Assembly: GCA_009859145.1 (NCBI GenBank)
Contig: VRVR01000001.1
Span: forward strand, 435,692-499,691
Direction of reading: 5' to 3'
DNA: 64,000 nucleotides
Origin: Andalucia godoyi And28
Lineage: Eukaryota; Protista; Jakobida
The translations under genes and the position numbers were made by a program. The notes beneath the pieces were generated by a model. It saw only the letters and a program-made list of their open reading frames with translations, did not search any database and was not told the origin of the DNA. This document shows, piece by piece, positions 14,407 through 64,000 of the stretch. Every line of letters starts with the position of its first letter. Position 1 is the stretch's first letter.

Positions 14407-14491
14407 AACAAAAGAATGAAACCAACAATATGACCTAGGCAATACGCCTACATTATACACTGAACGTGCATATCTACGAAATAGACATGCA

Positions 14492-14600
14492 TCGCGCTCC
14501 GTTCCCAATCTCGATCAGTCTGTGAGCCACTTTCTCAGCGTGACACGTTGTTCCTGAGAAGGGTGCATTTTGATTCTGACGGCCCTAGCAGCAGGCGCTT
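14492..14600 (-). pseudogene. Fanzor/TnpB fragment: N-terminal motif joined by deletion to the RuvC-III motif
   Basis: RAVRIKMHPSQEQRVTLRKW resembles the TnpB/Fanzor N-terminal R-x-Y-P-T-x-E-Q-x-x-x-L-x-x-W motif; immediately followed by GAT CGA GAT TGG (G) AAC GGA GCG. Confidence 0.75.
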
Positions 14601-14689
14601 TCGTGTCCTCAGTTGCAGCGATTGATGCACCTGGAGATACGAGAGGAAGAGGCGGTAGGAAGACGGTGGGATTTTGCGACTGCGACTGC

Positions 14690-14824
14690 GCCTGGGGCAT
14701 CGTAGCAGAAAACCACGAGTTCTGCAAGAGACGGTCCCTGAGGCTTCTGCTTCGGGTTGGCTGCCCTGCGTGCTGGGGATTGGAGATCGTGTCTTGGAAG
14801 TTCGCTGGACGAATGATAGATGGC
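14690..14824 (-). pseudogene. Possible degenerate IS607 TnpA catalytic-domain remnant
   Basis: One frame reads AIYHSSSELPRHDLQ...RAANP...AELVVFCYDAP, and RDRL(t)CR lies at 14739-14721. These weakly resemble the IYARVSS..Q..DLQ, (R/K)DRL.RF and ELVV motifs of IS607 TnpA. Confidence 0.4.
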
Positions 14825-15016
14825 TACGTGTAAGCACGAATTCCCTGTGAAACAAACGAGCTGGTGTCGGCCAGTGTTAACCGTGTCTGTTTATGTATAC
14901 TCCCCCGTATGCATGACAATGACGTGCTATTATTCAACGGTTTTAATCAGGAGTTGTTCAAAAACTGTCTGTAGTGCACCGAAAAACAAAAACAGAATGA
15001 CAAAACAAAAAAGAAT

Positions 15017-15089
15017 CACCCGATGGGGGGCTCGAACCCCCGACCCTGGGATTAAAAGTCCCATGCTCTTCCGACTGAGCTAACCGGGT
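15017..15089 (-). tRNA. tRNA-Lys(UUU)
   Basis: 73-nt cloverleaf ACCCGGTTAGCTCAGTCGGAAGAGCATGGGACTTTTAATCCCAGGGTCGGGGGTTCGAGCCCCCCATCGGGTG; anticodon TTT. Confidence 0.95.
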
Positions 15090-15531
15090 TTCTGTTCTAC
15101 GCCAAGCATCAAAATTCATACATTAATTAACAGTACGCAACCTCAACCAGAAACGCGGTACAGCCGTTGAATTTGAAAACGTGGGAAAACGCGCTTTCGC
15201 CGTGGAATGGAGACCACGGGTTTCATCTCGAGAGGCGCAGCTGTTGTCGTCCCAGCTGATGAAAGTGTTAACTCATTCCTTCAAATCACGGAAAAATACG
15301 TGTATGTAACATAGAAGGGTACACGGTGCTTTTTTTGGTACGAACCAGAATCGTTGAAGGAAAGAAGAGACCATGTGTTTTGAGGCCGTGCGCGGGTGAC
15401 TGTTTCCAAGTGCTCCCAGAGTTCTACCTATGCTTGTTTCATTCTTCCTTGTTTCGAGTTTCCTTGCCTGACGCGAATGATTTTCTGCGTAAACAATCTG
15501 ATAATAATTGAAGAAAGGCTCAAAATGTGTC

Positions 15532-15604
15532 ACCCGGTTAGCTCAGTCGGTAGAGCATGAGACTCTTAATCTCAGGGTCGTGGGTTCGACCCCCACATTG
15601 GGTG
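15532..15604 (+). tRNA. tRNA-Lys(CUU)
   Basis: 73-nt cloverleaf ACCCGGTTAGCTCAGTCGGTAGAGCATGAGACTCTTAATCTCAGGGTCGTGGGTTCGACCCCCACATTGGGTG; anticodon CTT; T-run terminator follows. Confidence 0.95.
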
Positions 15605-15772
15605 CTGTTTTTTTCCCCCACTCACCGCCGTCTTCTTTTTCTTTTCTTTTTTCCTTTTGACCAATCCCATTCCTTTTGTCACGAAGTACGATCTCCAGAT
15701 TCGGAGAGAGGAAACGAGACTTAAAACCGCGGAGCAGCAATCGCAGTACCCAATACTCAGGTGCAATAGAAA

Positions 15773-16300
15773 ATGTCGTCGTCGGACATCCAGCCTTCCC
15801 TGCAAGACCGAGAACAGCTTATGAGAGTTTGGGCAGTTCGTCGTCGAATGGCGCTCGATGCGAAGAAGTGGCTTGACTCTGATTCCTCCGGCACACCTTC
15901 TGCTGTACCTTCGTCGACGTCTCTATCCCCTTCCTCCAATTCCAATTTGAATGTCAATCCAAATCCGAGCTCGACTACGAACGTCGTTCCGCAGCAATCG
16001 AATGGTGCGACTGCTGAAAGGAGGAGCGAGCATCCGAGTGCAGCAAGTTCGAATGGAAACAGTGCTGGAAATGCCGGCAGCGTGTTTTCGGGGTTTTCTG
16101 ATCGCGACAAGCTGTTTTTGTCGCGCATGGAAGAGAGAGTGGATGTGTTCAAGGAGGAAGTTCTGCGGGAGGTTATCGGGCAAATGGCACATGAAAAGGC
16201 GCAGTCAGCAAGGCTTGAAAAGGAGCTCGAGTGGTCGCGTCGACGCATCGCAGAGCTCGAAAGAGAAGTCGAGAAACTCAGATCCGTGCATTCTAGATAG
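15773..16300 (+). CDS. Hypothetical protein with C-terminal coiled coil
   Basis: 175-aa ATG ORF with a heptad-like C-terminus. Confidence 0.65.
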   Translation: MSSSDIQPSLQDREQLMRVWAVRRRMALDAKKWLDSDSSGTPSAVPSSTSLSPSSNSNLNVNPNPSSTTNVVPQQSNGATAERRSEHPSAASSNGNSAGNAGSVFSGFSDRDKLFLSRMEERVDVFKEEVLREVIGQMAHEKAQSARLEKELEWSRRRIAELEREVEKLRSVHSR

Positions 16301-16841
16301 CAGGATTTTCTCCCCCCGTCTTTCGTTTTCCGTTTTCCGTTTTCCGTTTTCCGTTCTCAGGTTTGTACCTTGGTTCCGATGCGAGACTGAATATGGATGG
16401 TCAGCAGTGATTCGCCATGCTTCGCTAGACGTTAAGCTCCTTTCTGTATAAAAAACAATGCTAAAACGATATTTAAAAAAGTAACAATCGTAGACATGGC
16501 TGAAAACGGAATCACCTGTCGTGTTGCTCGTCGACTGTAGTGGCCTTCGAAATCCAGGTCGACTTGCCCCGTCAGTCGTTGTCACGCTGACCGTGACCAG
16601 TCGGGTCAGCCGCTGACCCGAGTTGCAATTGGAGGGAAAATATAAGAAAATACTCTCCGCTATGCGTCTTAGCGAGTTTGGAAAGCAGTTTTTCCTTTTC
16701 TTTTCTTTCATTCATATTTCAAGTATGTTTTCCTTTAAATTTGAACATTGATATTCGTTTTATTTATTTATTTAATTAATATTATTTATTTATTCGAAAA
16801 AAGCTTGATCTATTCATTCATTCCAGCCACGCAATTTGAAC

Positions 16842-17969
16842 ATGCGTGCATCCTTTGCGGTATTGGTGTTGGCGGCTGTGCTGGCTGCGGCGTTTGTTAC
16901 GGCAGCTACGGCGGCGCCCTCTGCGCTGTCCGAGGAAGAGGCCGCGGTGTATCTTCCGCAGTTTGAAGCGTTTAAACAGCAGTTTTCAAAGGCGTATGCG
17001 GATGCCAACGAGGAACAGTTCCGGTTCCGTGTCTTTGTGGACAATGTGAAGGAAATCGCACGGCTGCAGAAAACGACGACAAAGACGAAGTTTGCCATTT
17101 CAAAGGTTTCGGACCGGCTGTTGGAAGAGCTGGCGGGCACTGTGAAGCCTGCAGCTACCACTCCGTTTGTGGCCAATCCAAAGCAGAACAGTGTGCCGCA
17201 GCTGAACGAAAACAAGCGGGTCAAGGTCAATGCAGGCCAGCCGTTCACTTGGCAGGGCACCAACCGCGTGACCTATGTCAAAGACCAAGAGTATGTCTTC
17301 TTGTTGCTCTTCTCTTCTTATTTTTAATTATACACCTTGCGTATTTCGTGCAAATGCTGACCTGTCAATAATGTGTGGTGGTTTGTTAGATCTTGCGGCG
17401 GTTGCTGGGCATTTGCGAGTGCTGCAGTTGCCGAATCTGCGTGGAATTCTGGGAACTCGCTTTCGCCGCAACAACTGATTGACTGCTTGTCGGACCAGAA
17501 TGGCTGCAATGGCGGATGGCCTGCGACGGTCTTGTCGGATATGATTGGACAATTCTGGGAGGGATGGTCCGACTACCCGTATGTCGGCTATCAGAATTCC
17601 CAGTGCATGCAGTCATCGTCGCTTGCGCAGTACACGTACAACTATCAAGTGGGCACCGCCGATTCGATTGACTACAACACGGCGTTCAGCAACATCCTTT
17701 CGTACGGAACCGTTGCAGTGGCAATCAACGCAAATTCTGCATTCCAGTCGTACTCTGGCGGCGTGATCGACATCGATACGTGCGACGACAGCACAGTGAA
17801 CCATGCAGTGTCGGCTGTCGGTTACGCGTACGATGACAACGGCGATCCGTACTACATTGTCAAGAACTCATGGGGTCCGTCGTGGGGTATCAATGGATTT
17901 GTCTACATCCGCGCTGATACCAATGCCTGCAACATCAACTTCTCTCATGCATGGTTGCAGTTGTCTTAG
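16842..17969 (+). CDS. Secreted papain-family (C1A) cysteine protease with I29-like propeptide; exons 16842-17290 and 17389-17969
   Basis: Signal peptide; prodomain FEAFKQQFSKAY...RFRVFVDN; splicing GTATGT...TTAG gives VKDQESCGGCWAF; NHAV; YYIVKNSWG. Confidence 0.9.
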
Positions 17970-18372
17970 GATCCTCTGCACGCGTTTTTTCGGCCCCCTC
18001 TTCTTCTATCTGTTTTATAGTTGCTTTTGGTCATTCTCTTATTTTTCGATGTTTCCGGTCGGTTTTCCCTTGTTGGTTTTGTTTTTCATGTTGCTCTCTG
18101 CTTTTGATGTTCTTGGATATTACGTTTCTTTTCACATTCTGTTCGTATTCTATGTTGTAAAATTCCGGTTGCCGGTTCTTTTCTTTTTCTTTTAAAATGA
18201 CTTATTGCACTTCAACCTTCAATCTGTCTCACAGGATCACATTCATACGTACCACATACCATTCCGACATACATCACGAGCACGGCACCAGTCAGGAAGA
18301 CCAGCCCAAGCAAAGGCAGAAGAAAAGAAAGAAAAAGAAGAAGAAGAAAAAAATAGAGAAAGAAGAGGATCA

Positions 18373-21300
18373 TCAACGTTGATTTTCAATGAGTCCTGCA
18401 TCAGCTTCGTTGCGGCTCGTAATTGCGGCCTTTTCCCGCTGCGAACCTGGCGGATCCTTCCAATACTTCTTAATCTTCCAACCCAACCAGCCAATGAACG
18501 CGGCAACCCAGAAACAGAAGATGAGAGCAATGAGCACGCGGAAACCGAGGGTGGACTGCGTCGTGTCGGTGTCCTGCAAGCGATCGAGAACAGGAATCTG
18601 CTCATAAATGATCGCCACAATAACCAGAGCAAGACAGGACAGCGAAGCCACCTTGTTCACCGCACGCTGCACAAACGGCTTCGTGTAGAAATGCACAAAC
18701 ATGTGCACGACAACCACGGCGACAGCGAGAAACAGCCGTGCCGAGATAGAGTAGTCGTGCCACTGGCGCGTGACAATGAGGAGCAACAAACGCCTGAAGA
18801 GGTAAACCAGATCGTAGAAGTACCACTGGCGGTTGTACGTCAGAATGAAGAATTTGAACGCCCTTACTAGGCCCTCGGAGCTATCCGCACTTGTCGTTGA
18901 TGAGGACACAGCGTACTTGTCGGAAGACGAGAATGCGCCATGAGGGGACTCAGCTTGGGGGCGCCGAGGAAGGCGATCCTTGATCAGGAGGAACGCAGCA
19001 GCGAATGCCAGAGGAAGAAGAATGACAACGATGATGAGAAATGCTATTGCAAGGCCGGTGACGTCCTTGTGCGACTCCGAACCGAAAGAAACGGCAGGAT
19101 TGGACGACAGATACTTCTCTCCACCGATGACACGATACGCAAAGTGATCCAGAACAACTTCGGAAACGGGAGTGTGAAGGAATGTTAGCAGAAACAGAAG
19201 TGACTGCAAAAACGAGGCCACAACCACATTCTTTGGATTAAATCCCTCGAAAGCCGGATCCCCGCGATGACGAGTGGACTGCCAAAAAACATATCCAGCA
19301 TACACAGGAAATGTCAGCGCCATGCCCAGCAACCACACAAACGGAGAAAAGACAGACAATGCGAAGTACTGAGCATACGACATGTCCGAAACACATTCGT
19401 CCGTGATTGCAGAACCAAAGATTGCAAAATTCAGAGAAAAAACATTCATGTACGAGAAATTCGCAAGAATGGCGCAGGTTTGGAAAAAGTCAAAGAAAAT
19501 CTTCATGAACGAAAACGACTTGTTGTGGAGCGTGTAGATCAAGAATAGCAAAGCCAAACCCATAATGACCATGAACGTCACTGCTCCGCCACCTACACCA
19601 TGAGACTTGCAGGGAATGCAGATTCCATTGACCTTTGCGTATCCAGAACCACATGTGGCACACAGCACATTTTGATAATGATTTGCGCACCGGTTGTCCG
19701 CGAGACACATTGACGCGCAAGGAGAACTGAAGGCACAGTTCTCAAGATCGCAGGAGTACATTTTGGCTTTGTTTCCTTCAATGTTTCGGTAAAAATTCTT
19801 GCGCGACAGCACAAGATTTGCACCGGGGCAGGTGGCGCCATCCGGGCAATCAAAACAACCGGAAATTCCATCCAAGTTGTAAGTACCGCGAGCACACGCG
19901 ACGCACACACCGTTGAAATAATAATAGCCTGGTTGGCATGTAGGGTTGATAAACGTGACGAACCGAGACTGTTTCCTCGCCCCCACCCCAAACAACACAA
20001 CACACGTGGAGTTCAGCGGTCCACCAATCGACATTCCAGATGTAGTAGCTTGGCCATTCACAAGCGACACCACTCCGCCGCTCGCCAAGTAGCACGACTG
20101 ACCCGAGTCGACCGAAATGCTTACAGACGGGAAATCGGAAGAAGTTGGAATTTGCGCGCCGAACGCATCCACAACAGTCAATGAGACATTGATCAATTCA
20201 CCAGCGTACACGGTCGGAGGAAATGCTGCAGCTTGCACGGGGTTTGTTTGCGCAGGGGCGCTGGAAATGAAAGGCGGGGACGAAATGAATGAGTTTCCAT
20301 CCATGACCTTTTGCAGGGTGAACAGGCGGGGAATGGCATTCAAGTACAGCGCCGACCCCGCGGCAGCCTGTTCATTCGTGAACGTGTTGCCAGCCATGAT
20401 TACTGAAGGAACGGAGTTGCCCTTTGTCACAGCGTTCGAATACACCGCCCCACCATAGTACGCATAGCTGCCGGAAAATGTGCACATGGTCACATTCAAA
20501 TTCATTCCCGAGTGATAAATCGAGCCCCCCGTCGAGTACTGCAGTTTGAGCGTGCGGTGGTTCGCAAACGACGTTCGCGAAATAGTGAGGGAATCTACTG
20601 CAGATGCAGCATCCGACGACTCATAGGAGATGGCACAACCTTGATCCATGCACTGGTTGGATTGAAAATAACAGTCCTCAAAGAACGTGGCATCAGAACT
20701 GGTCAGGCGGACGGCAATGTTTTGGTTGTTGATAAAACGCGACTTCAACACTCTCAACCTCCCATTGGTTCCTTGGATGGCACCTCCAGTTGCCGACAGC
20801 GTGTTGTTCATGAACGTGACGCTGTCCAGCGTAATGAGCCCTTCGGACGCGACGTACAATCCACCGCCAACCGAATTGTATGCACCGTTCGCAGCAAATG
20901 ACGTGTTATAGATGTACACAGTATCAAGAGGACCTGGGGACGCGAAGACTCCAGACCCCACAAGCCCAGCTGCGTTCTTGTAAAACTGCGAGCCCACGAT
21001 CGTCAGAGTAGACCGTGCAAAAATCGCTCCTCCCTGCGCAGCACCCGTGAAGCACGACGTCGGGGACGTGCATCCTGAGAAGTAAGAATTTGAAATAAAC
21101 GCTGGAGAGCGAAGCATAAGTGCGCCACCGTACCCCGAAGCCACAGCCCTGTTTCCAGCGAACGAACAATCGCGAAACTCCGTCTTCATTCCTGACGAAA
21201 GAGGCGCGCCGTCCAAGTAGACCGCTCCACCAGATCCCGAGTTTGAAGCTGCAGCGGCAGCGTTCAGTGTCCAAGTGCAATTTACAAAGACCGGAGCTGA

Positions 21301-21705
21301 GAAGCTCGATATGGTCACTGCAGTTTGCGTGTCTTGTGAAAAACTCGCCGAGATCAGCATCGGGGAAGCATCTTGGATCAGAAGCGCGCCTTTGCATTTT
21401 GTGAATCCTAATCCATAAATCGACAGATCGCGATTCCGATTTATGATTTTGACACCAAACAGAATGTTTGTTGCATTTGTGCAGTCAATGGTTACTCCGT
21501 AAGCATAGATCGTCTTGATGGAAGACGACGACGCATCAATGGTGATGTTCCAGTTCCCGGCACCCGTGCATGACGTGCATGCATTCCACACAAGCGACGT
21601 CTGCGCTGCAGCAATCGCGGAATTCAGCTGATCTTGCAAAGTCGCCGCCGTTAGCCCAGCCGCCAGCACAACGAGCACCACGACAGAAACGAACGATATT
21701 CTCAT
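18373..21705 (-). CDS. Cell-surface protein: signal peptide, pectin-lyase/PMP-like beta-helix repeats, Cys-rich (GCC2/3-like) segment, about 8-9 transmembrane helices
   Basis: Repeated F..N.A...GGA(I/L/V) motifs; CQPGYY..C..CARGTY..C..CPDGATC; multiple hydrophobic C-terminal segments; ATG at 21705. Confidence 0.8.
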   Translation of the reverse strand: MRISFVSVVVLVVLAAGLTAATLQDQLNSAIAAAQTSLVWNACTSCTGAGNWNITIDASSSSIKTIYAYGVTIDCTNATNILFGVKIINRNRDLSIYGLGFTKCKGALLIQDASPMLISASFSQDTQTAVTISSFSAPVFVNCTWTLNAAAAASNSGSGGAVYLDGAPLSSGMKTEFRDCSFAGNRAVASGYGGALMLRSPAFISNSYFSGCTSPTSCFTGAAQGGAIFARSTLTIVGSQFYKNAAGLVGSGVFASPGPLDTVYIYNTSFAANGAYNSVGGGLYVASEGLITLDSVTFMNNTLSATGGAIQGTNGRLRVLKSRFINNQNIAVRLTSSDATFFEDCYFQSNQCMDQGCAISYESSDAASAVDSLTISRTSFANHRTLKLQYSTGGSIYHSGMNLNVTMCTFSGSYAYYGGAVYSNAVTKGNSVPSVIMAGNTFTNEQAAAGSALYLNAIPRLFTLQKVMDGNSFISSPPFISSAPAQTNPVQAAAFPPTVYAGELINVSLTVVDAFGAQIPTSSDFPSVSISVDSGQSCYLASGGVVSLVNGQATTSGMSIGGPLNSTCVVLFGVGARKQSRFVTFINPTCQPGYYYFNGVCVACARGTYNLDGISGCFDCPDGATCPGANLVLSRKNFYRNIEGNKAKMYSCDLENCAFSSPCASMCLADNRCANHYQNVLCATCGSGYAKVNGICIPCKSHGVGGGAVTFMVIMGLALLFLIYTLHNKSFSFMKIFFDFFQTCAILANFSYMNVFSLNFAIFGSAITDECVSDMSYAQYFALSVFSPFVWLLGMALTFPVYAGYVFWQSTRHRGDPAFEGFNPKNVVVASFLQSLLFLLTFLHTPVSEVVLDHFAYRVIGGEKYLSSNPAVSFGSESHKDVTGLAIAFLIIVVILLPLAFAAAFLLIKDRLPRRPQAESPHGAFSSSDKYAVSSSTTSADSSEGLVRAFKFFILTYNRQWYFYDLVYLFRRLLLLIVTRQWHDYSISARLFLAVAVVVVHMFVHFYTKPFVQRAVNKVASLSCLALVIVAIIYEQIPVLDRLQDTDTTQSTLGFRVLIALIFCFWVAAFIGWLGWKIKKYWKDPPGSQREKAAITSRNEADAGLIENQR

Positions 21706-21794
21706 TTTCTTTTGAGATCCGGAAGAGGCTGTCAGCAAAACCTAGTACGCTCAGTACAACAGCAACTCCACACACACACGCGCGCGCGCGCAAA

Positions 21795-21856
<62 letters not shown>

Positions 21857-22175
21857 ACTAACTTGGACACTTGCACGATACAGAAAGAAGAATAAATATA
21901 GACTCGACGACGACAACGCTAAAGAAGGCTTTAATGAACACGAGAAAAAGATACGCACGAAAAAACGATGGCACAGAAAATTTCGGATCGGGAATCGAGG
22001 TTAAAGAATTTCACCGCCGCGGGCACAGGGGGATGCCAGCCCGCCAGCCGGGCATCGCTACGGCAGCCCGTGGGAACGTTTGAGAATGGTCCTACGTGTA
22101 CTGGCACATGCGAAAGAGAACATCCCCACAACAAACGCTTCGTCTCGCGACAGGAATGGAGAATAAGAGACTGCT

Positions 22176-23735
22176 TTACATGTTACAAGCCACAAAGATG
22201 TTGAAACCTTCCGAGGCAGTTGATACGATGGATCCTGGAATTTGAGGATGCCAATGAACTTCCTTGACCTGCTGCTGGCCCTGATGGACAAACATGAGTT
22301 GCGGGGGTACATCTTTAACGTCCTCGTCGTGGTCTGAACCGACGATTCGCATACCTTGGACTCGCTCCTCCTCCTCCACAGCTTCCGGAGTTTGTGCAGT
22401 CTTTGACGCCGAGTCGTCGCGTTCGACAGACAGATCCCACAATGTGATTTGATCATCGTCAGACGAAACGGCAAGCACAGATGAATCGGTTGGATGCCAT
22501 TCGATCGACGTGATGGGGGCCTTGTGATAGTCAAATGACGCTGCAAACGTGCCCGAATTGAACATTCGAAGATCCCATACTCGAAACACGCCGTCATCTC
22601 CACCGGAGGCCAGCAGATAGGCCATTGTTTTGTTCCAGGAGATGACGTTGACGTCGGAAGCATGTGCATGGCCCACGACAACGGATGCCTTTCCTGTGCT
22701 TTGTCTCATGTCGAACACACGAACAGACCCATCGACACATGCTCCACAGAACACGTACTGTTCGGTTGGAGACCACTGGATGTCTTCGATCGAATGGCCG
22801 TCATTTTCGGCAACAAATGACGCACGAGTCCAGGCAGAACCAGTGCTGGAAGTAGGAACACAGACACCTACATGACCCTTGCAATTTCCAATTGCGAGAT
22901 AGCCCTTTTGCGCATCCAACGTCGACCAGTCCATTGCGTAACCTTCGGTTCCCCTGCGTTGCTTTCCTGAACTGCTCTGCAAAATCGAATCGCAGACGAA
23001 GAATGGCGTTACATCCCCGGAAATTTTCGACGCTGCAATGGAATCCAGTGCAGCAAGATGCTGTGACACATCAAACAGCGAAACGCTACCTAGCTCAGAC
23101 CACGTCGCCAAGATGTTTGGAGTCTGCGGCATACTCCGGATTCGATTGACACACCCTCGGTGATTGATGGTTCTGCACTCCACTTCCGGGTCCTCGTCAA
23201 TGTCCGAGTCGTCGTCCTCGTCTCGATCCGAGTTATCAGGATCATCATCAAAACGAGTTCTGCTGAGTTTTGCACACTTGTACAACGAAATCTTGTTCTC
23301 GTCCACAGACTCGGCTTGGGTGCCTGCAGCAAAATACATCGTGTGGGGATATCTCTTACGAGCCATCCCGAATTTGTCTCGTATAATATCAAATGACAAC
23401 GAAGGCCATTCCGTGCGAAGCTGGTGGAACATGTTGTAAGCAGTGGGATCATAATCAAGAGTTTCACCTTCTTCCATCGTGTCGACTCCCTTTCGCCATA
23501 CTCGACCAGGAACCTTTGAAACATGGTCTCCGTCGGCGAGTTCCTTCATTTGCGTGTCTTCATCGTCTTCATTGTCTCCTTCGCCCGCATCCACTACAAC
23601 CTCTCCTTCGTCTTCGTCATAATCATCGCCAAAATCATCCTCAAACTGAATATTCATCTCTTCATTTTGCTCTGCGTTCGATTGCGACTCTGAAAATTGC
23701 ACTCCTTTTCGCCGCTTTGCACCATCCATAGGCAT
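22176..23735 (-). CDS. GRWD1: Glutamate-rich WD40 protein (GRWD1/Rrb1), ribosome biogenesis
   Basis: LDYDPTAYNMFHQLRTEWPSLSFD, AGTQA, HRGCVNRIR, SIEDIQWSP, DVNVISWN, PPQLMFVHQGQ, EVHWHPQIPG. Confidence 0.9.
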   Translation of the reverse strand: MPMDGAKRRKGVQFSESQSNAEQNEEMNIQFEDDFGDDYDEDEGEVVVDAGEGDNEDDEDTQMKELADGDHVSKVPGRVWRKGVDTMEEGETLDYDPTAYNMFHQLRTEWPSLSFDIIRDKFGMARKRYPHTMYFAAGTQAESVDENKISLYKCAKLSRTRFDDDPDNSDRDEDDDSDIDEDPEVECRTINHRGCVNRIRSMPQTPNILATWSELGSVSLFDVSQHLAALDSIAASKISGDVTPFFVCDSILQSSSGKQRRGTEGYAMDWSTLDAQKGYLAIGNCKGHVGVCVPTSSTGSAWTRASFVAENDGHSIEDIQWSPTEQYVFCGACVDGSVRVFDMRQSTGKASVVVGHAHASDVNVISWNKTMAYLLASGGDDGVFRVWDLRMFNSGTFAASFDYHKAPITSIEWHPTDSSVLAVSSDDDQITLWDLSVERDDSASKTAQTPEAVEEEERVQGMRIVGSDHDEDVKDVPPQLMFVHQGQQQVKEVHWHPQIPGSIVSTASEGFNIFVACNM

Positions 23736-23807
23736 GTTGTCACGCTGCAGGAAATTCCGCACTGGGAGGAAAAAACGAAAACCAAGAATGGATCAAACAC
23801 GAAACTA

Positions 23808-35236: not shown

Positions 35237-35365
35237 CGCCTACATTATACACTGAACATGCTGCATATCTACGAATAGACATGCATATTCAATCCTGCAT
35301 CCCGTTGTCGGGAAGGGGATAGGCCCCCCAACACGCCTCACGGCGTTCTTCAGATAGATGTTCTG
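35237..35365 (-). ncRNA. Candidate omegaRNA scaffold at the element B right end
   Basis: Follows the Fanzor C-terminus. Hairpins ACGCC-GUGA-GGCGU (35346-35333), UCCCG-ACAA-CGGGA (35313-35300) and a 10-bp stem with UUCG loop (35285-35262). Ends at the terminus conserved in all three copies. Confidence 0.55.
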
Positions 35366-35583
35366 CGCTCCGTTCCCAATCTCGATCAATCTGCGAGCTA
35401 CACGCGGGACATGCAAACACTTTGCTTCCACACAACTTGCGATGGATTTCCCCCCGCAACGGCCGCATGTTTTAAACGTGTACTCCTCCGTCACAAGTCA
35501 CAATCGACACCTGCCGCCCCGCGAATTCGCGCGATTTGCAGAGAAGCCGCTGCCGCGCAGTTGTCGCCTTGGCGATCTTTCCT
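35345..35583 (-). pseudogene. Fanzor/TnpB C-terminal fragment (post RuvC-II, Zn finger, RuvC-III)
   Basis: After correcting small indels: KIAKATTARQ/RLLCKSREFAGRQVSIVTEEYTFKTCGRCG-EIHRKLCGSKVFACPACSSQIDRDW-NGAQNIYLKNA. Confidence 0.88.
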
Positions 35584-35671
35584 GGCGGCGGCCCAGCGCT
35601 GGAAAGTGGCGGTGGAGATTATCATGGGTCTTGCGCAGCGTTGCGGGCGTGACGGACATGGCGCGCTGCAT
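35584..35671 (-). pseudogene. IS607-type TnpA N-terminal MerR-like HTH fragment
   Basis: MQRAMSVTPATLRKT(H)-ISTATFQRWAAA with one frameshift; homologous to element C. Confidence 0.7.
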
Positions 35672-35911
35672 GGACAATAACAATATAAATAAAGATATGA
35701 GCGTCGCTGTGCGAGAATGCAACGCGGCGGCGTGTGTTATAGGGATTTCGTGATCAAAATGGGGCGAAACGAATCGGGCATCGTGTGACGGAGTTGCCAA
35801 GATAACAAACGCATGCGCATGGCGCGTGGCAGTGTTTTTTTTGTTTGCGTGCGCTTTAGATTGCTTCATCATCTTGCAATAAGTGGCAACGGCGAGTCGG
35901 ACGACGAAGAG

Positions 35912-37762: not shown

Positions 37763-38270
37763 TGAATGGGGGGCCAACTACTACTACGAACCTACTATTA
37801 TTGTAATCTTCTACTTTTCTTTTTCCTACGCTTTTTCTACAACAGCGAGAACCGAGCACTACAAACGGATGACAGGGATAAACGAAGTACACGAAGAGCA
37901 CTCTATTTCTTAGTTTCCCACTTATCCAAAAACCAAAAACCAAAACCAAAAACCAAAAACCAAAAATAAAAACGCAAAGATTTATAGTCAAACTACGGAG
38001 TTTGAAGGGACGTTTGGAAAGGTGACGGTAATCAAAAAGGGTCTTTGTACAGCAGGAAAGTGAATTTCGTCGCCCTCAATGGCCCAATTCCGATCCTCCT
38101 CTTTCGTGCGTTCGTGCGCGATGTGTGGGTGGATGGTTATTACGATCATTATTATTGTTATTTAATACATTTTTTGGGATTGTTGTAAATTACAAAAGGG
38201 AGGTTTTGTACGCTGCTGCATACTCGTCGCACGACACTCTACAATCATCACGTACTCGGTTTAATAAAGA

Positions 38271-38585
38271 ATGACGAAGCTTGCACCTCCAGATCTGAAA
38301 AAGTATTTGGAAAAGAAAGTCTCTGGTATGCACGCTGTTGATTTTTTAATGAATGTTTATATTTTTATCTTCTGACTGCTCATTGTTGTTTCTTCGAACA
38401 TAGTGAAAATGAATGCAAATCGAACTGTGGTTGGAATTCTGAGGGGGTTTGATCAGTTCATGAATATCACAATGGAGGATGTCATTGAGCTCGTGCATGA
38501 CGACGGCGCCCCAGTTCCATTAGGCACTGTTCTTATCCGCGGAAACTCTGTGCACATGCTTGAATTACTGGAACGATCCGAATAA
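38271..38585 (+). CDS. SNRPG: Small nuclear ribonucleoprotein G; exons 38271-38325 and 38404-38585
   Basis: Spliced [39 protein letters not shown]...IRGNSV; intron GTATGC...ATAG. Confidence 0.9.
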
Positions 38586-39045
38586 ATGTCATGATTAACG
38601 AACAACAAGATGTGTAGCATCCAATCTCTCTCTCTCTCTCTCTCTCTTCAACTTTTGTCATCACCTGCGCCAGTTCGTAGTGGATTCCGGACGGCTGAGC
38701 AGCCCGGTGCTTAAATAAAATAAATATTAAAAAAGACACGAGGCTTAGTGAGCGTGTGCGCATTGATACGTTGATCCACGTTCCCAGAGCGTGTCACCAA
38801 CACGACTTCTACTCGCACAGCGTTGCCTGTCGTAAAGGGACCATTAAAGGACAGCACTCAGAAAAAGAGCGTTTCTCAACGTTCTTCTCTGTTATTCTCA
38901 TCCATGCTATTCTGTTCTTCCTGTTTTTTTTTTCTTTTTGAATTCCACTAAAAACAAACGATCAAACAAAACGAAACAAAAAAGAAACGAAACAAAAAAG
39001 AATAAAAAAGAAACGCAAAGAAGAGAAGAGATAGGGAGTGGTAGG

Positions 39046-40824
39046 ATGACTTCTTCTACCGGGTTTTTGAGCACGACGACGACGAAGAAGAATGCCTCTT
39101 TTCGCCCTCTGACGAATTCGACGTCGCGAGAATTGTTGGCGTCGTACACACAGTCCGTACAAGGAAAGTACAACACTGGGATTGCGACTCGGTCATTTGT
39201 GACGGCTTCGACGGCAGCTCAGATTTCGCAGGCGCATTCGTTTTTGCTATCGGGAGATGGAGATGCGGCGATTGCGATTGTCCAGGGAATTCTGAGGTCG
39301 TTTCATGATCCTTCGCTCGATGCAGAGTTGCTGATGTTGCTGGGCGACGCGCAGTTGCAAGTTGGCGAAGTGGAACGGTGCGTCGAGTCGTTCACGGCTG
39401 CTCTTCAATCAGAACCTATGCTTCCTCATGCCTACAGAGGACGGGCGAAAGCATATGAAAAACTCGGGAAATTCGAAAACGCAGTTTCTGAATGGAGAAA
39501 AGTCGGCCAAGTCGATGACTACTCGGTGGACGACTGCGTTGCATATGCGAATTCGCTCTTGGCGTGCTCTTCATTCCGTGCCTCCGGTCGCAGCATCGAG
39601 CATGGTGCGGTTGAAGAGGAGGATGTCACGCAGCGAAATGATGCGCTGGCACAGATGGGGAAGCAGGCTGTCGGGTTGTACAGCAAGGCAATTGGAATGG
39701 AGCCAAGCATCCCTGGGCTGTACTTTTACCGAGCGCATGCACTGCATCAGATCGGACTGGATTCTGAAGCAGAGAAGGATCTTGTCTATATCCGATCTTC
39801 GTTTCCGAATTTTGTCGACCAGTATGTCCGCGAAGGAACCGTCGATTCGCTTCGTGCGGCCTTGATGCTGCTTGAAGAACGTGACCCGCGAACAATCATT
39901 ACAAAGTACAAGCTCGCCGATATGCTGATGCAGGATTTGCTTGCCTCGTCGGATGCGCAGGAAGCAAACGGTGCAGAAGGCGGGGGTGCCCTGGGACTTG
40001 TTCACGAAGTGCTGAGCTTGTTTTCTACGGTATTGGATCGGATGCCAGGCGGATTTGTCGTGCGGCCAAGTACCTTGTATGCGAATCGTGGGGCAATCTA
40101 TTCACGGTTTCTGGGGGACAACGATCGAGCTCGAACGGAGTTCCAAAGTGCTCTTGAAATGGCAGAGCAGGAGGGCGAGGCTGCTGCAGAAACGAGAGAG
40201 TCGGCCGTTCTTGCCCTGATTTCCTTGGCCGTCAAGTACACAGACGTGGTGTCGATCGCGAACTCGCGTGGTATTCCTGGAAAAGATGCGTCTATGGCGT
40301 TTGTGCGTGCCGTGATGGAAAAGTCGGTGGCCGCTTTGCTCAAGTTTCGCTCGGAACTGGACTTTAGAATACAAGACGCAAAGACACAAATTGAGGAGAC
40401 GGAAGCCGCTTCTGCAGCGGACGAGTCCATGAAGCCAAGAGTCAGTGAGCTTCAGGAAGCTGCAGCCGCGCTTCTTGCGGAGTGTGCAGACCTGGAAGCG
40501 AACATTGCTCAAATCACAGGTCGTGGAATTTCTGTCAGCATGCCCGTGAATGCATTCGGAGAGGCGGCCGCGCAGCTGCTTTTGCGATCGGTTGTGAGCA
40601 GGCACCATGTTGCTGTTTCCTCTGAACAGGAGAACCACGGGGCTGTTCTTCGGATGGTGGAATTTGCGATCAGGGCATACTTGGAGCATCCAGAGGGACC
40701 TTCTGTTTTGGGCCCTGTTGCCGACGACTTTAAATCGAGCATTGCTGCTGTCCAGGAGAAGCGAGATGCCGCAATCCAAGCACTGCGCGATGCAAAGGAC
40801 CCCAAGAAGAAGAAGAAAAAGTAA
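39046..40824 (+). CDS. TPR-repeat protein
   Basis: Helical repeats LLGDAQLQVGE..AL, AYRGRAKAYEKLGKFENA, LYFYRAHALHQIG, LYANRGAIY; first plausible ATG at 39046. Confidence 0.8.
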   Translation: MTSSTGFLSTTTTKKNASFRPLTNSTSRELLASYTQSVQGKYNTGIATRSFVTASTAAQISQAHSFLLSGDGDAAIAIVQGILRSFHDPSLDAELLMLLGDAQLQVGEVERCVESFTAALQSEPMLPHAYRGRAKAYEKLGKFENAVSEWRKVGQVDDYSVDDCVAYANSLLACSSFRASGRSIEHGAVEEEDVTQRNDALAQMGKQAVGLYSKAIGMEPSIPGLYFYRAHALHQIGLDSEAEKDLVYIRSSFPNFVDQYVREGTVDSLRAALMLLEERDPRTIITKYKLADMLMQDLLASSDAQEANGAEGGGALGLVHEVLSLFSTVLDRMPGGFVVRPSTLYANRGAIYSRFLGDNDRARTEFQSALEMAEQEGEAAAETRESAVLALISLAVKYTDVVSIANSRGIPGKDASMAFVRAVMEKSVAALLKFRSELDFRIQDAKTQIEETEAASAADESMKPRVSELQEAAAALLAECADLEANIAQITGRGISVSMPVNAFGEAAAQLLLRSVVSRHHVAVSSEQENHGAVLRMVEFAIRAYLEHPEGPSVLGPVADDFKSSIAAVQEKRDAAIQALRDAKDPKKKKKK

Positions 40825-41070
40825 TTTCTCCTCCTTCTCAGCCCCGTCTTCGTCTTCATTGTCGTCGTCGACGTCGTCTCGCACCTTGTACAAAACAAAA
40901 CAAAAAAAAATACCCCCAACAAAGAAAACTTGTTTACATATGGTCCATCCTCGTTCTTTTTTTTAATTTTCTTGTAAGATAAGAATAAAAATAAAAAAAC
41001 AACAACCAACAGACACACCACATGGGAAAAGCAATTACTCAGACGCTTGCACGCGACTTGGGGGGTCCGT

Positions 41071-41993
41071 CTACATGGGAGCCATGCGAAGAGACCCGTC
41101 GATCCGGATGGTCTCTCCGTTGATGTACGGGTTTTCGATGATGGACTTCACCAGTGCAGCGTACTCTTCAGGTTTACCGAGTCGGCTGGGAAACGGAACG
41201 CTTTTCCCCAATGCTTCCTGGGCCTTTGCGGGCAACGAAGCCATCATGGGAGTGGAAAACAAGCCAGGCGCGACCGTGGCGACGCGAATGCCCAGGGATG
41301 CCAGTTCGCGCGCAAGCGGAAGGGTCATTCCCACGACTCCAGCCTTTGAAGCAGCATATGCCGCTTGACCAATCTGACCGTCAAAGGCCGCCACAGAAGC
41401 AGTCATTACAATGACACCTCGCTCTCCATCTTCATTGGGCTTCTGGCGGGCCATGACTTCCACAGCCAACCGAACAATGTTAAACGAACCGCTCAGATTG
41501 ATTTTCAGAATCTTTTCAAAATCCCCTAATGGATGCACGGACCCGTCTCGGCCAAGCGTCTTCTTTGCCAGTGCAATCCCTGCGCAATGCACAACACCGT
41601 TCAGTTGTCCGTACTGCGCAATGCACTTTCCTATTGCTGCTTTCACAGACGACTCTTCCGAAACCTACATCATTCGACACGCCCCAAATTTTTGTTTTCG
41701 TTAAAATAAATATATAAACACATTACGGAAAGAAAGGGGGGAAAGCCCATGTTACTACTGCTATAAGAAGCGTACAAGGCGAAAACATCAGCACGGGGGA
41801 AGTGGGGAGCATGCCATACATCAGTCTTGTGGAAAATAGTTTGCGGAAGCGAACTGCAAAGCCCATTGCCGACTTGTTCGTTCATATCGGCAATCAGGCA
41901 GCGGGCACCCTGCGACACCAGGGCGCGCACAACGGCTTCTCCGAGGCCGGATGCGCCTCCAGTCACAAGAAACACAGAGGACGGGATATGCAT
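41071..41993 (-). CDS. HSD17B10: 3-hydroxyacyl-CoA dehydrogenase type 2 (SDR); exons 41993-41820 and 41664-41071
   Basis: [53 protein letters not shown]-like, [21 protein letters not shown]. Confidence 0.92.
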
Positions 41994-42429
41994 CGTTTGG
42001 AAGCGTCGGTACGAACAGAAGATCGAGAGACTGTTTTTATTGGTTGTGCTGTTTTGTTGTTGTCATGAAGTTTGGTTTTGCAGGGGTTTTCACCCGCAAG
42101 CTTTCCTCCGGGCCGCCTTCCATCGAGAAATAGAAGCTTACACTCCAAGAGAGGAGGGCGGGCCAGCACTGAAACTCAAACAGCTAGCTGCAAGTGGAAA
42201 TTCCATAGCTGCTTTTGAAATCTGGCCGATAGCTGCAGTGCACGCTTTTTTTTTTTCACGATTTTTCTGGCAGAGGCTCTCTCAACCCCCGGAATCGGTG
42301 CCCGTTCTTTTTTTTTTCCCCCTTCTCCCGCGTCTTCTTGTTTTTCCCTGGCTTCTGCTTGTTCTGTGTGTTGTTTTCAACTTCTTAACTTCTAATGCCT
42401 AATGATAGGTCTACGGGTCATTGATTTGC

Positions 42430-44298
42430 ATGAGCCGCGTGGTTTGTCGAAAGCCTTGGATTGTAGCTTCTCTAGTTGACTTTATCGAAAATTTCAAGTT
42501 TCCGATCCAAGAAAAAGTCGTTCAGATCGTGAGTGTGAAGTCGCTTTTGCTTCCTGAATCTCACTTTTTCTCTCGATTTTGGACGGCAAATTCAAATTCG
42601 GCATTGCTCAAGTTTGAGACGTTGGTACAGAATAAGATATTCGAGCAGTTTGCTCATTCTCCAGGATCCACATTTTCGTATTTTCGCTGTGCAGTCTCGG
42701 ACGGCCACTCTTTGATTTGGGCGCACTTGTCTGATTCTGCCTTTGGCTCGTTTCTGAAGCAACTGCTGCCGTTGAAACCGGGCGACATACAAGGGATTAC
42801 AGTGAAATTAGACGCCTTTTCGTTTGGAGTAGATCGAACAAACCATCAATTTGCTCTCAAGATTGACAAGGTTCGCGTTGTCGATCGATCTCGTTGCTTT
42901 CCATTTCGAAAAGAACTCCCCTTTGTCAACGATCGACCTCCCGTGCGCATTCTGTATCAGCGGATCGTTTCTTTCTACGAGTCCCATCAGTCTTCGTACG
43001 ACGCTGCAATTCACCAAGTCAGCTCGGAGACATCTGTGAACTTTCTCGCAGGCGGTCTGTTCACTCAGGATACCGAGCTTGTGGGACTGCTCGCGCTCGT
43101 ACGACTTGTCCAGCAATCCGGATCGATTCTGTCGCTGTCGTCGTCAACCTCTTCTTGTGCTCTTTCTGCCGCTGCTGCCGTGGATTTGCCAGCGGTTTTG
43201 CATCCTCCGCCGCCTCCTGTGAGCACCACAATCCTGTCAGCAAAAATGCAGTCCCGCAGCATGCTGGATGTTTCCGACAACCCCAGTCATCACGACCGTT
43301 CGCGAACACAACCAAACTCTAAAAAGATTCGCATGCTTGCTGGGGGCACATCGATCCGCTCGATGGATGTGCTACCCGCACTCCAGCTTCCCGAGCCGCA
43401 GAAATGGCTTATGAATTGGAACGATCGTCAAATGTTGGCAGTTCGAAGCACCGGCACTGACCAGCCCTTGAACCCTGCCTTCTCTCTTGTTCCACGGGGG
43501 TTCTCAAAGATTTCCTACCAAAAGGACAGCGCAACTCTGGATGTGGCGCGTCAGGCGCAGCTCCGTATTTCACAGGAGGACGAACCCGCGTTGACGCAAG
43601 AATTGGAGCACTCCGATCGAGTCCGCGTTCATCAGTCATCTGGTTCGCAATTTGAGACACAAGAAATGCGCGTGCACTCTGCGTGTGCTGGTGATCCCGG
43701 TGATGCGGAGGTTGAGAGCGGCAGCAACGGTCATGTCCATGAGCAGGACAGGGTGGTTAGTCCGTCTGACTTGGAGTTCTCACAGTCACCAGTGCGAAAG
43801 CGGGCCAGAGCATCCAGTTTTACTCACGAGAAAGCTTCAACGGAGGGTGATGAGAGCCTTGTCGACTGGGCAAAACTAATGTCTCCTGAAGGCAAGCGTT
43901 TGCTGGTCGATGAATCAATCGATATTGATCTTCCGTTTGCGGCAGTCCGTAGCCCCGCAGAGCACGAAGACAATGACGAAACCCAGGACCCAACCGCGAA
44001 TCTCCTTTATGCATTTGGGCCGAATGATGTGAACTCCAGTTTAAGCCGGGTTTCGGCAGGAGTTGATACGTCTTTCGTGTATACTCCATCCATGTTTGAA
44101 TCCAGCACCGGGTCCTTGGAGAATCGAAAGAGGATACTTCACGACGCCGACGAATCACAAACACCGGAGTCAAAACGCTCGCGCAGTGCGTCCGGAATGC
44201 ACTCCGGCGATGCCACCACTCCTTCCTCCGGCTCCAAGCTCACCACGAGTATTAACTGGTTTTTAAGCACCATTATCGGAATGCGCAAACCGCGTTAG
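42430..44298 (+). CDS. Putative TPP1/Est3-like OB-fold telomere protein with disordered C-terminus
   Basis: N-terminal KPWI, then VSDGHSLIWAHLS and alternating beta-strand pattern ending in LPFVNDRPPV, as in the TPP1 OB fold. Confidence 0.55.
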   Translation: MSRVVCRKPWIVASLVDFIENFKFPIQEKVVQIVSVKSLLLPESHFFSRFWTANSNSALLKFETLVQNKIFEQFAHSPGSTFSYFRCAVSDGHSLIWAHLSDSAFGSFLKQLLPLKPGDIQGITVKLDAFSFGVDRTNHQFALKIDKVRVVDRSRCFPFRKELPFVNDRPPVRILYQRIVSFYESHQSSYDAAIHQVSSETSVNFLAGGLFTQDTELVGLLALVRLVQQSGSILSLSSSTSSCALSAAAAVDLPAVLHPPPPPVSTTILSAKMQSRSMLDVSDNPSHHDRSRTQPNSKKIRMLAGGTSIRSMDVLPALQLPEPQKWLMNWNDRQMLAVRSTGTDQPLNPAFSLVPRGFSKISYQKDSATLDVARQAQLRISQEDEPALTQELEHSDRVRVHQSSGSQFETQEMRVHSACAGDPGDAEVESGSNGHVHEQDRVVSPSDLEFSQSPVRKRARASSFTHEKASTEGDESLVDWAKLMSPEGKRLLVDESIDIDLPFAAVRSPAEHEDNDETQDPTANLLYAFGPNDVNSSLSRVSAGVDTSFVYTPSMFESSTGSLENRKRILHDADESQTPESKRSRSASGMHSGDATTPSSGSKLTTSINWFLSTIIGMRKPR

Positions 44299-44739
44299 CA
44301 TGTGCCTTCTTCCTGCTGAATGTTATTATTATTATTATTATTGTTGTTGTTGCTGTTATTGTTATGATTCTGCATTTTGGTTTCCCCCATCCTGTACAGC
44401 TCGTTCTTGTTCTTCGTGCATACAGCAGAGCCGCTGCGTACGCGCTCGTAACGTCTGTGACCGCTCGCCAGGCATTTCGCCTTGATTAGTTATCGTCGTC
44501 TGCAATTCGGACCGAGACGATTGATTCGCAGGATCGGCAGGCATGCAGCACTGCAATAGTACCAATTAGAACCAATTAGTATTGATGCAGCGTATTCTTG
44601 ACATGCGCCTTTCCCGCTGTATAAGTCGCTCGTTGTCGATTTCTTTACATATAAAGCTGAAAGCCTCTTTCCAATTTGTTTCCTTCTCGCTTTCTGTCTT
44701 GTTGGTTTTCTAACGAGTAGAACAGACCAACACGGAAAC

Positions 44740-44877
44740 ATGCTGAGAAGACCTCCTACAAAGCTTGAAGTTGGAACCGAGGCTGATTTTGAAGATGTTT
44801 GCGCAGTCCGTGATTTCAACTGTCGATATCCCCGTATGAAAGACAACGACGGCTCACCGAAGCGTCCCTATTCCTGA
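44740..44877 (+). CDS. Possible CDC26/ANAPC12-like small APC/C subunit (may be spliced to an exon near 45001-45130)
   Basis: MLRRPPTKLEV..E.DFED resembles the conserved CDC26 N-terminus MLRR.PT.(L/I)EL. Confidence 0.45.
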   Translation: MLRRPPTKLEVGTEADFEDVCAVRDFNCRYPRMKDNDGSPKRPYS

Positions 44878-45221
44878 TCATTTGTCCTCTAATTGCTTGT
44901 TTTATTTCCCCTTCTTCTTCTCCTTACGTCCTCGTCGCCGTCGTCTTTTTATTTTTTTTATTTTTACGTTTTTTATTTTTTAAAAAAATGGATTTTTTAG
45001 ATTCTGCAAACGACGGAAAGCCTAGAAGAGTGTTTGGGTCGCAGGAACCTCAGAACACCATTGCGTCTCTTGCGCAACAAGCTCGGGCGCACTCTTCGAC
45101 CTCTAGTACCACCACTTCCCAATCATAATCCATTTCGTATGTACGGCTAATTGCAAAAATAATAAAAGGAATAATAAAAAGAAGAGAAGCAAAATGCATT
45201 GCGGGGGTGGTGGAACGTCTT

Positions 45222-45580
45222 CTATGTTTCAGTTGGCGAGATGGATGACAACGATAATGATGCTGATGATGATGCTCTGCAAGCCGGTGACGAAGACGGC
45301 TGCCTATGCTCAATCATTGCGAGTGAGACACCGGACCGAGTAGAAGGAAATCGAGAGAGAGAAAGGGGGGATGGTCGGTGTAATGCAAAGTACTGTGATA
45401 GAGCACCCCGGAATCCAAGCGCGTGGAGTAAAGGAAGAGAATCCAGCAACTTTCGAAATCCGACAAATGCAAGCACGACTGACAACACTCGAAGCTCGTG
45501 CCGTTCAAACCCAAACAAGACCATGGTTGATTCTTCTCTAGGAGTGGCGATGATGAGAGCTGGTTGTAGAACCTGCCTTG
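45222..45580 (-). CDS. Possible exon of an unidentified minus-strand gene (weak F-box-like pattern)
   Basis: Open frame after a CAG acceptor: VLQPALIIATPREESTMVLFGFERHELRVLSVVLAFVGFRKLLDSLPLL...; start not resolved. Confidence 0.3.
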
Positions 45581-45837
45581 TCGCGTTTTAAAAAATATGT
45601 TTATTATCGAATATCCAAAACAAATAATTATAATAATTATAATTAATACTCGTGCGCCGCCTATATGGATTATGCCGTAGCACAGTCGGGCAAATTTCCC
45701 CGCAAAAATCTCCGAAACCTCCGCCGACAAAGCGTACGAAATTCCCGAACGCCTACATTGTACAATAACCACGAATAATCATCGCTGATCACCCATAATC
45801 AATGTTGCAACCCAACAACATGCATAGCATGCTTGCC

Positions 45838-45960
45838 GGAGGCGGCAGCTGCTTTGCGTAGCGCATCGTGACGCACGTCGTATGGCACCTCTGCTAGCCA
45901 TGGATGCTGCAGCACAGTCTCAGAATCACTGTTGAGAAGCAGTGCGCGCAGCGCCTTGAT
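45838..45960 (-). pseudogene. Fanzor internal (REC-region) fragment
   Basis: IKALRALLLNSDSETVLQHPWLAEVPYDVRHDALRKAAAA resembles the Fanzor W-L-x-x-x-P-Y-D-(I/V)-R-x-x-A motif. Confidence 0.78.
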
Positions 45961-45964
45961 TTTG

Positions 45965-46110
45965 GGCCGGCTGTCCGACGGCGCGTTCGACGTCTGCGAG
46001 GCAGTACATGCGATGGGAGCCGGCGTGGATGCTGCGGATCGTTTCGGCGGGGCGGAGATGCCATAGGTCTTGCGCAGCGCTGCGGGCGTGACTTACATGG
46101 TGCGTTGCAT
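45965..46110 (-). pseudogene. IS607-type TnpA N-terminal MerR-like HTH fragment
   Basis: MQRT..VTPAALRKTYGISA-[deletion]-AETIRSIHAGSHRMYCLADVERAVG. Confidence 0.78.
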
Positions 46111-46460
46111 GGACAATAAGAATAAAAATAAGAAATGAGCGTCGCTGTGCGAGAATGCAGCGCGGCGGCGTGCTTATAGGGATTTTATGATCAAAACGAA
46201 GCGAAACGAATCGAGCATCGTGCGACGGAGTTGCTGAGATAACAAACGCATGCGAATGGGCGCGTGGCAGTGTTTTTGTTTTTACGTGCGCTAGATCATC
46301 AAAATTCCCGAACCGCATTGCGTTTCCGAGCTGTTTTTGGTCTTTTTCAGCCATTCGGCTTTTTCTGCATGCAGACGGTGTAGAGCAGACGAGTATCTGA
46401 CGGGAATTAGGCAATAAGGTCATCTAACTTGCAGAGACACAAACCAGAAAGAAAAGGAGG

Positions 46461-48408: not shown

Positions 48409-48442
<34 letters not shown>

Positions 48443-63565: not shown

Positions 63566-64000
<435 letters not shown>

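Follow-up and report, generated by a model that had tools for sequence, protein, structure and literature searches.

Probable relics of an IS607-type, Fanzor2-encoding transposon in the nuclear genome of the jakobid Andalucia godoyi

A 64,000-nucleotide stretch of nuclear DNA from the jakobid protist Andalucia godoyi And28 (assembly GCA_009859145.1, contig VRVR01000001.1, positions 435,692 to 499,691; here termed the window) holds three short islands, A, B and C, and a smaller scrap, D. All four are very probably defunct copies, with internal deletions, of a eukaryotic IS607-type transposon. When intact, the element would have been about 2 kb long, and would have comprised a noncoding left end of about 200 bp, the serine recombinase TnpA with its N-terminal MerR-like helix-turn-helix (HTH), an RNA-guided Fanzor2 nuclease, and a short right end. 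The three islands were first noticed by a model that was given only the letters and open reading frames of the window (the sequence-only reading), which took them for a nonautonomous family resembling miniature inverted-repeat transposable elements (MITEs).

Three islands with a common terminus

The islands share one terminus. With one mismatch allowed, the 15-mer CGCCTACATTRTACA occurs in the window only at 14445, 35237, and 45750, always on the plus strand (expected number, 0.00), and none of 100 dinucleotide-preserving shuffles of the window yielded any match. Moreover, the left flanks of A, B, and C are unrelated right up to the first base of the terminus. Both features had been recognized in the sequence-only reading, although only one of its two variable terminus positions in fact varies (A or G on the plus strand).

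DNA similarity extends inward from this terminus and reappears at the opposite end. B 35611/35623-35855 and C 46051/46062-46292 are 87-88% identical across 234-246 bp (blastn, nhmmer), which bears out the shared left end of about 240 bp. A resembles B in two blocks: 14445-14492 versus 35237-35286 (90% identity, blastn) and 14494-14530 versus 35365-35401 (92%, blastn). Because these blocks adjoin in A and are separated in B, about 75 bp of B are missing in A. The islands were also rightly described as GC-rich (54% G+C, versus 32-46% in adjoining intergenic DNA). The layout from left end to right end does not apply to A, however, which has no recognizable left end and is 5'-truncated or diverged. 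The recognizable parts, in window coordinates, are these:

13480-13554, plus strand: relic D, a 25-codon nuclease scrap from the RuvC-II region (..VCEEYDCILHWKFDTSRMVRRGR..); tblastn E = 0.088
14445-14830, minus strand: relic A, with right end, RuvC-III scrap, and N-terminal piece of the nuclease; left boundary uncertain, homology to about 14823
14445-14491, minus strand: right end of A, with invariant tail (14445-14458) and inner hairpin (14467-14491); fold z -2.87
14494-14530, minus strand: RuvC-III motif remnant of A (..QTDRDW..), 92% identical to B 35365-35401
35237-35874, minus strand: relic B, made up of a left end, a scrap of the TnpA HTH, a deletion junction close to 35586, the ~90 C-terminal codons of the nuclease, and a right end
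35237-35293, minus strand: right end of B, with 14-nt tail GTATAATGTAGGCG (35237-35250) and 18-bp hairpin (35251-35293); z -2.26
35292-35585, minus strand: C-terminal nuclease remnant of B, with alternative glutamate, CxxC...CxxC zinc ribbon, and DRD; matches PF07282 and the family profile
35586-35671, minus strand: TnpA N-terminal HTH remnant of B (MSVTPATLRKT.. / ..ISTATFQRWAAA), with one frameshift
35672-35874, minus strand: left end of B, noncoding, about 200 bp, 87-88% identical to C; nhmmer E = 6.5e-93
45739-45750, no strand: first copy of the direct repeat flanking C (AAATTCCCGAAC, perfect, 12 bp); the final base of this copy doubles as the element's terminal base
45750-46301, minus strand: relic C, with left end, TnpA HTH scrap, 35 codons from the N-terminal region of the nuclease, and a right end of the second subfamily
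45750-45801, minus strand: right end of C, with tail ..GTACAATGTAGGCG and 16-bp hairpin (45766-45801) with GCGA loop; z -4.40
45856-45960, minus strand: nuclease fragment of C (..KALRALLLNSDSETVLQHPWLAEVPYDVRHDALR..); tblastn E = 3e-8; hidden Markov model (HMM) E = 2.8e-9, profile positions 144-183
45977-46110, minus strand: TnpA N-terminal HTH remnant of C (M-stop-VTPAALRKTYGIS / AETIRSIHAGSHRMYCLADVERAV), with one in-frame stop and one frameshift
46111-46301, minus strand: left end of C, noncoding; nhmmer E = 1.6e-86
46302-46313, no strand: second copy of the direct repeat flanking C (AAATTCCCGAAC); its 11-mer is found nowhere else in the window

Relic D lies on the opposite strand to the islands, in an AT-rich spacer upstream of an Arf gene, and has no recognizable ends.

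A nuclease and a recombinase in pieces

Nuclease remnants are present in all three islands. A protein search with the concatenated peptide pieces of the islands led to three proteins: a 437-residue metagenomic "putative transposase" with PF12323 and PF07282, the closest full-length relative (68% identity over the matched parts); a bacterial TnpB; and ANDGO_03800, an annotated paralogous copy. On its contig, L001, the frame of the metagenomic protein is open from base 1 for at least 572 residues and includes KKRPPRVRP, which resembles a nuclear localization signal. In tblastn, this L001 protein gave one significant match per island and no other in the window: B 35555-35292 aligned with residues 482-563 (E = 3e-13), A 14730-14524 with residues 126-194 (E = 8e-13), and C 45960-45856 with residues 217-251. 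A profile of the nuclease was then built from 15 metagenomic relatives, with no window sequence among them, and run on raw six-frame segments of the window with frames uncorrected. It matched C (E = 2.8e-9), B (7.1e-9 and 9.8e-7), and A (1e-7; 14823-14518); the fourth match is D (13444-13587, plus strand, aligned over 13480-13554 to profile positions 368-392; E = 3.9e-4).

Frame-corrected, the C-terminus of B matches PF07282 at 45.5 bits (E = 8.8e-12; Pfam cutoff, 26.3). Read base by base, it contains the alternative glutamate and the zinc finger VSIVTEEYTFKTCGRCG...KVFACPAC, once a 7-bp duplication is discounted, followed by a RuvC-III motif that reads IDRDW/NGAQNIYLKNA; A retains ..TDRDW... 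The position of the alternative glutamate, E367, is invariant in the alignment of the relatives. The RuvC-I DPG region has been lost from all three islands; ANDGO_03800 has it as IALDPGVRTF, and DPG is invariant in the relatives. Yoon et al. 2023 (PMC10711439) give two fingerprints for Fanzor2: DPG, and an alternative RuvC-II glutamate a few residues ahead of the zinc finger. Because the family has both, the nuclease is assignable to Fanzor2 by motifs and profile. B itself has the alternative glutamate and the C4 zinc ribbon with RD/DRD, in a eukaryotic host. The solved structure nearest to the metagenomic protein is that of mimivirus Fanzor2 L79 (PDB 9b0l; E = 3.6e-26), and the named database relatives include mimivirus R104-like transposases, chlorovirus transposases, and glomeromycete proteins.

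For the recombinase, the relatives and ANDGO_03800 give firmer evidence than the window. When 85 relative loci were searched with TnpA from a bacterial IS607 element (locus L002), nearly all of them, the closest eukaryote-type relatives included, proved to encode a TnpA on the nuclease strand, immediately ahead of the nuclease core. Pfam identifies these proteins as Resolvase (E = 1e-19 to 7e-23) and MerR (E = 2e-6), with MerR/HTH_17 confirmed. The paralogue ANDGO_03800 is collinear with TnpA: residues 8-43 correspond to the HTH (E = 0.001) and residues 34-93 to the C-terminal tail (E = 6e-10), beyond which the protein continues into the nuclease at its DPG motif. In the window, B 35659-35621 matches the HTH piece of ANDGO_03800 at 85% over 13 residues, and C 46048-45977 (with 46098-46054) at 83% over 24 residues. 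The sequence-only reading had described broken MerR-HTH and nuclease pieces across the islands. The nuclease is indeed in all three (HMM E = 1e-7 to 3e-9), whereas the MerR-HTH is in B and C only, and each piece is nonsignificant alone. The order that it proposed (left end, TnpA, nuclease, right end) nevertheless appears to be correct, mainly on the basis of the relatives and ANDGO_03800. More generally, its assignment to the family that combines an IS607-type TnpA with a TnpB-like Fanzor nuclease is upheld by the nuclease profile, PF07282, the MerR/Resolvase TnpA of the relatives, and a terminus in TAGGCG.

No gene is intact in any of A, B, or C. Each has been deleted differently: in A, nuclease residue ~194 is followed directly by the DRD motif, and 75 bp of the right end are gone; in B, the HTH is fused to the nuclease at residue ~470; and in C, the HTH runs into nuclease residues ~217-251, and these into the right end. 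The nuclease remnant of B is disrupted by a tandem duplication of 7 bp (TTGTGAC) and by three or more other frameshifts, of which two fall in G runs. Both the duplication and the out-of-frame tail CDGGVHV-stop are common to B and ANDGO_03800; an extra G in GATTGGGAAC is common to A and B. Since these lesions are shared at separate loci, copies that were already broken must have been copied. None of the islands can move or cut unaided, because the catalytic domain of TnpA, absent from the window copies, and most of the nuclease have been lost. The copies thus are nonautonomous, as first proposed, and defective copies were propagated. ANDGO_03800 is the only further copy documented.

Established IS607 biology suggests how the intact element would have behaved: TnpA would excise and insert it without terminal inverted repeats. 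By analogy with TnpB and Fanzor, the right end, which overlaps the end of the nuclease gene, would be transcribed as the scaffold of a guide RNA, and the guide would be host DNA just beyond ...TGTAGGCG. The nuclease would cut empty sites, and repair would then restore the element. Defective copies likely spread in trans, through TnpA that was then active, or by duplication.

Right ends and overlapping frames in the relatives

The right end is shared well beyond A. godoyi. The closest relatives have the same ...TGTAGGCG terminus as the islands. L001 terminates in ...CAGTGTAAAATGTAGGCG, 39 nt past its stop codon. Loci L007 and L008, copies of ~2.0 kb that are 88% identical, cease to be similar exactly after ...TGTAGGCGT. 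A conserved 3' region ending in TAGGCG is also present in L003, L013, L019, L021, and L023. Together, these termini mark TAGGCG as the true right boundary for a whole clade.

Just inside the terminus lies a hairpin, with fold z-scores of -2.3 (B), -2.9 (A), -4.4 (C), -6.1 (L001), and -9.8 (L023). In A, the outer 5' arm was lost in the ~75-bp deletion relative to B. Although hairpin identity among B, C, and L001 is no more than 55-70%, pairing is preserved in 50 of 51 cells (11-20 of 51 in slid controls), and five of 17 pairs are changed on both sides; the 14-nt tail is matched at 13 of its 14 positions. The right end of C differs from that of A and B (hairpin 55% identical, tail 13/14) and is nearer to that of L001. 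At least two right-end subfamilies are present, with A and B in one and C in the other. Hairpin and tail presumably represent the expected anatomy of the 3' end of a guide-RNA (omega-RNA) scaffold, judging from three sequences and a structure derived from the same three. Because an alignment of eight right ends from relatives gave no consensus structure, the covariation claim is limited to B, C, and L001. Rfam reported only the two tRNAs at gathering score in the window, and nothing for island B at E <= 1. For the metagenomic clade as a whole, terminus and hairpin define the likely boundary of the guide RNA.

One further segment, 16379-16412 on the plus strand, is similar to the hairpin region of the right end in its 5' half (nhmmer E = 0.0045) and may be a fifth scrap or a chance match. 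It was discounted as an extra right end, as the terminal tail is missing.

The relatives were also compared in the reading frames of their two genes. Metagenomic loci (L002-L085; 47 counted) and giant-virus loci (L086-L165; 49 counted) were considered. The nuclease frame is +1 relative to tnpA, and in the 47 metagenomic loci it is nearly free of stops across tnpA: 51 stops, where shuffling of synonymous codons predicts 203. (In the +2 frame, 592 stops against a predicted 630 show no depletion.) Most of the residual 51 stops, 41 in all, are in the first fifth of tnpA; the last two fifths have none. Across the nuclease core there is no such depletion (+1 frame, 963 versus 949), nor is there any in two tnpA genes that have no nuclease downstream on the same strand. 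The giant-virus loci have 111 stops in the +1 frame versus 254 expected. These counts suggest that the nuclease reading frame overprints most of tnpA, also in bacterial loci such as L002. The nuclease might be translated from within tnpA, in which case one stretch of DNA would encode two proteins; alternatively, the frame would be kept open by a constraint of another kind. No mention of this openness was found in the literature checked.

Two other interpretations are rejected, since TnpA lies in another frame of the same DNA: that the nuclease itself begins with MSVTPATLRK..., and that the relatives' long N-terminal extension is ordinary protein. The "NSWFS" of that supposed extension is the other-frame shadow of "KLVVL" in TnpA. 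In L007 (620-683) and L008 (825-896), the TnpA and nuclease frames break together and, after ~60-70 nt, are taken up again at the profile position that follows; each break looks like a short spliceosomal intron in the dual-frame region of a eukaryote-type element. In L001 (1-450), the TnpA frame has decayed (stop inside; HMM E = 1e-4) while the nuclease frame is open to the contig end. The overlapping frames of the relatives may be of wider interest.

Competing explanations and known systems

Several observations weigh against descent of the relics from an IS607-type element. Serine-recombinase transposition does not predict duplication of the target, and a perfect direct repeat of 12 bp stands on either side of C. 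In the window, profile evidence for TnpA is slight: E = 0.02-1.6 for C; no significance for B (HMM positions 16-37); nothing significant in raw six-frame segments; no MerR or HTH match in Pfam for the uncorrected HTH and N-terminal pieces; and a sole HTH match (HTH_17, E = 1.2e-4) that came from a chimeric B+C peptide and is below the cutoff. Thus, of the profile matches anticipated for the frame-corrected peptides, the nuclease exceeds its cutoff and TnpA remains weak. In addition, the hairpin covariation comes from just three sequences, no intact paralogue was found among the annotated A. godoyi proteins (so that past autonomy in this genome is deduced from relatives), and some homopolymer frameshifts could be errors of the published, 454-based assembly.

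One extension of the IS607 reading would accommodate the repeat around C. A. godoyi might still host, or have recently hosted, an active IS607/Fanzor2 lineage that mobilizes deleted copies, some of which (C) would have moved by a route that duplicates 11-12 bp of target; staggered cuts by the nuclease could be involved, and surviving right ends could supply guide RNAs to neighboring host DNA. We regard this as unlikely.

Another unlikely account dispenses with TnpA. A Fanzor2 lineage might have been captured by a transposon that duplicates its target site ("Fanzor2*"), or the islands might have been inserted by break repair, the TnpA-like scraps being incidental. Such capture has precedent, as Fanzor2 genes have been found in cut-and-paste transposons with target-site duplications (Yoon et al. 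2023, PMC10711439), and the repeat flanking C occurs nowhere else in the window. However, no terminal inverted repeats join the termini of B or C; flanking repeats around A and B are at chance level only; and none was seen for the L007/L008 pair, whose left-end boundary is unfixed owing to an indel. Moreover, the closest relatives hold an IS607 TnpA in canonical position, and ANDGO_03800 retains pieces of it.

Co-option by the host is improbable. Relics or right ends might serve as hairpins of a 3' untranslated region or a terminator, or might specify guide RNAs for a nuclease whose gene lies elsewhere: a distance of 39 bp separates the Arf stop codon from the start of relic A, the hairpins of the right ends remain stable, and the 14-nt tail is nearly invariant among diverged copies. 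Yet the hairpin of A has no outer arm, an intact nuclease was not detected in the annotated proteome, and the conservation fits equally well with recent common descent and past selection in active elements.

Least probable of all is an origin of the islands as pieces of a giant-virus genome that became integrated, instead of as transposon insertions of their own. Such viruses are rich in IS607/Fanzor2. Although many giant-virus contigs carry relatives, and the genome paper mentions unassembled subtelomeric scaffolds of transposon- and viral-like sequence, those relatives are at most 40% identical, far more distant than the L001 protein, and the islands (0.4-0.65 kb) end exactly at their own element terminus among host genes (Arf, tRNA-Lys, RNA polymerase large subunit), with no other viral genes nearby.

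The relics lie in an ordinary eukaryotic nuclear genome with few introns. The window is compact, with about 50% G+C and long open frames that encode, among others, an Arf GTPase, a CAMSAP-like protein, a CBF/Mak21 protein, and an RNA polymerase large subunit; four of its proteins are letter-identical to entries in the protein collection, with EukProt as the sole source. This agrees with the published A. godoyi genome (about 20 Mb, genes tightly packed, few introns), whose 454-based assembly omitted the subtelomeric scaffolds. Two tRNA-Lys genes with anticodons TTT and CTT lie beside relic A (15017-15089, minus strand; 15532-15605, plus strand) and form an 83-nt inverted repeat, 87% complementary, with 442 nt between. 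Spacers and coding repeats also contain long microsatellites with units of two or three nucleotides: (GA)n, (TC)n(TG)n, and (CTA)n(CTG)n, at 63562-63671, 13297-13342, and 48392-48477.

The IS607 reading can also be set against systems already described. Bao & Jurka 2013 (PMC3627910) reported eukaryotic and giant-virus IS607-type elements (ISvMimi_1/2, ACa-1/-2, ISvAR158_1, ISvNY2A_1). As with the A. godoyi family, these have TnpA followed by a TnpB-like nuclease, no terminal inverted repeats, the signature D...[TS][TS]xx-C4 zinc finger...RD, and eukaryotic hosts. They differ from the window copies, all of which are decayed and deleted, and were described without target-site duplications, in contrast to the 12-bp repeat of C. 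As expected for IS607, B and C have no terminal inverted repeats. Flanking repeats are at chance level around A and B but perfect around C, and a search for the crossover dinucleotide of IS607 insertion yielded no candidate.

The cyanobacterial "pro-Fanzor" TnpB proteins of IS607 elements (Yoon et al. 2023, PMC10711439; for example, L002) likewise have the DPG of RuvC-I, the alternative glutamate, and an adjacent TnpA with MerR and Resolvase domains; one such TnpB shows 58% identity over the C-terminus. They are bacterial, however, and are without the long N-terminal region of eukaryote-type relatives, some of which also have the intron-like interruption.

Short derivatives of IS200/IS605-type elements and MITEs resemble the islands in being short and noncoding, in keeping their ends, and in using a transposase in trans. 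MITE families are of uniform length and high copy number, usually with terminal inverted repeats and target-site duplications; in the window, each copy is deleted differently, inverted repeats are absent, and a flanking repeat is present in one copy. The term MITE-like therefore suits the islands as short nonautonomous elements, but not in their heterogeneous deletions or their ends. They are better viewed as natural material on element decay, with nested deletions that spare the ends and with propagation of broken copies. As nothing in them is functional, their practical value is modest.

Finally, mimivirus L79 (PDB 9b0l) and NlovFz2 of Naegleria lovaniensis encode the guide RNA at the right end, as would be expected here. 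Sequence identity is low and, the window copies being nonfunctional genes, the likeness carries no implication of activity. Jakobids do not figure in the host lists of IS607/Fanzor2 elements checked (literature tables), and "Andalucia" is absent from the searchable supplementary tables of two large Fanzor surveys; surveys of intact proteins miss genomes that hold relics only. With these relics, IS607/Fanzor2 elements, a kind already described, appear to gain a deep-branching group of protists as a new host, in a lineage (Discoba) where NlovFz2 of Naegleria had already placed the family.

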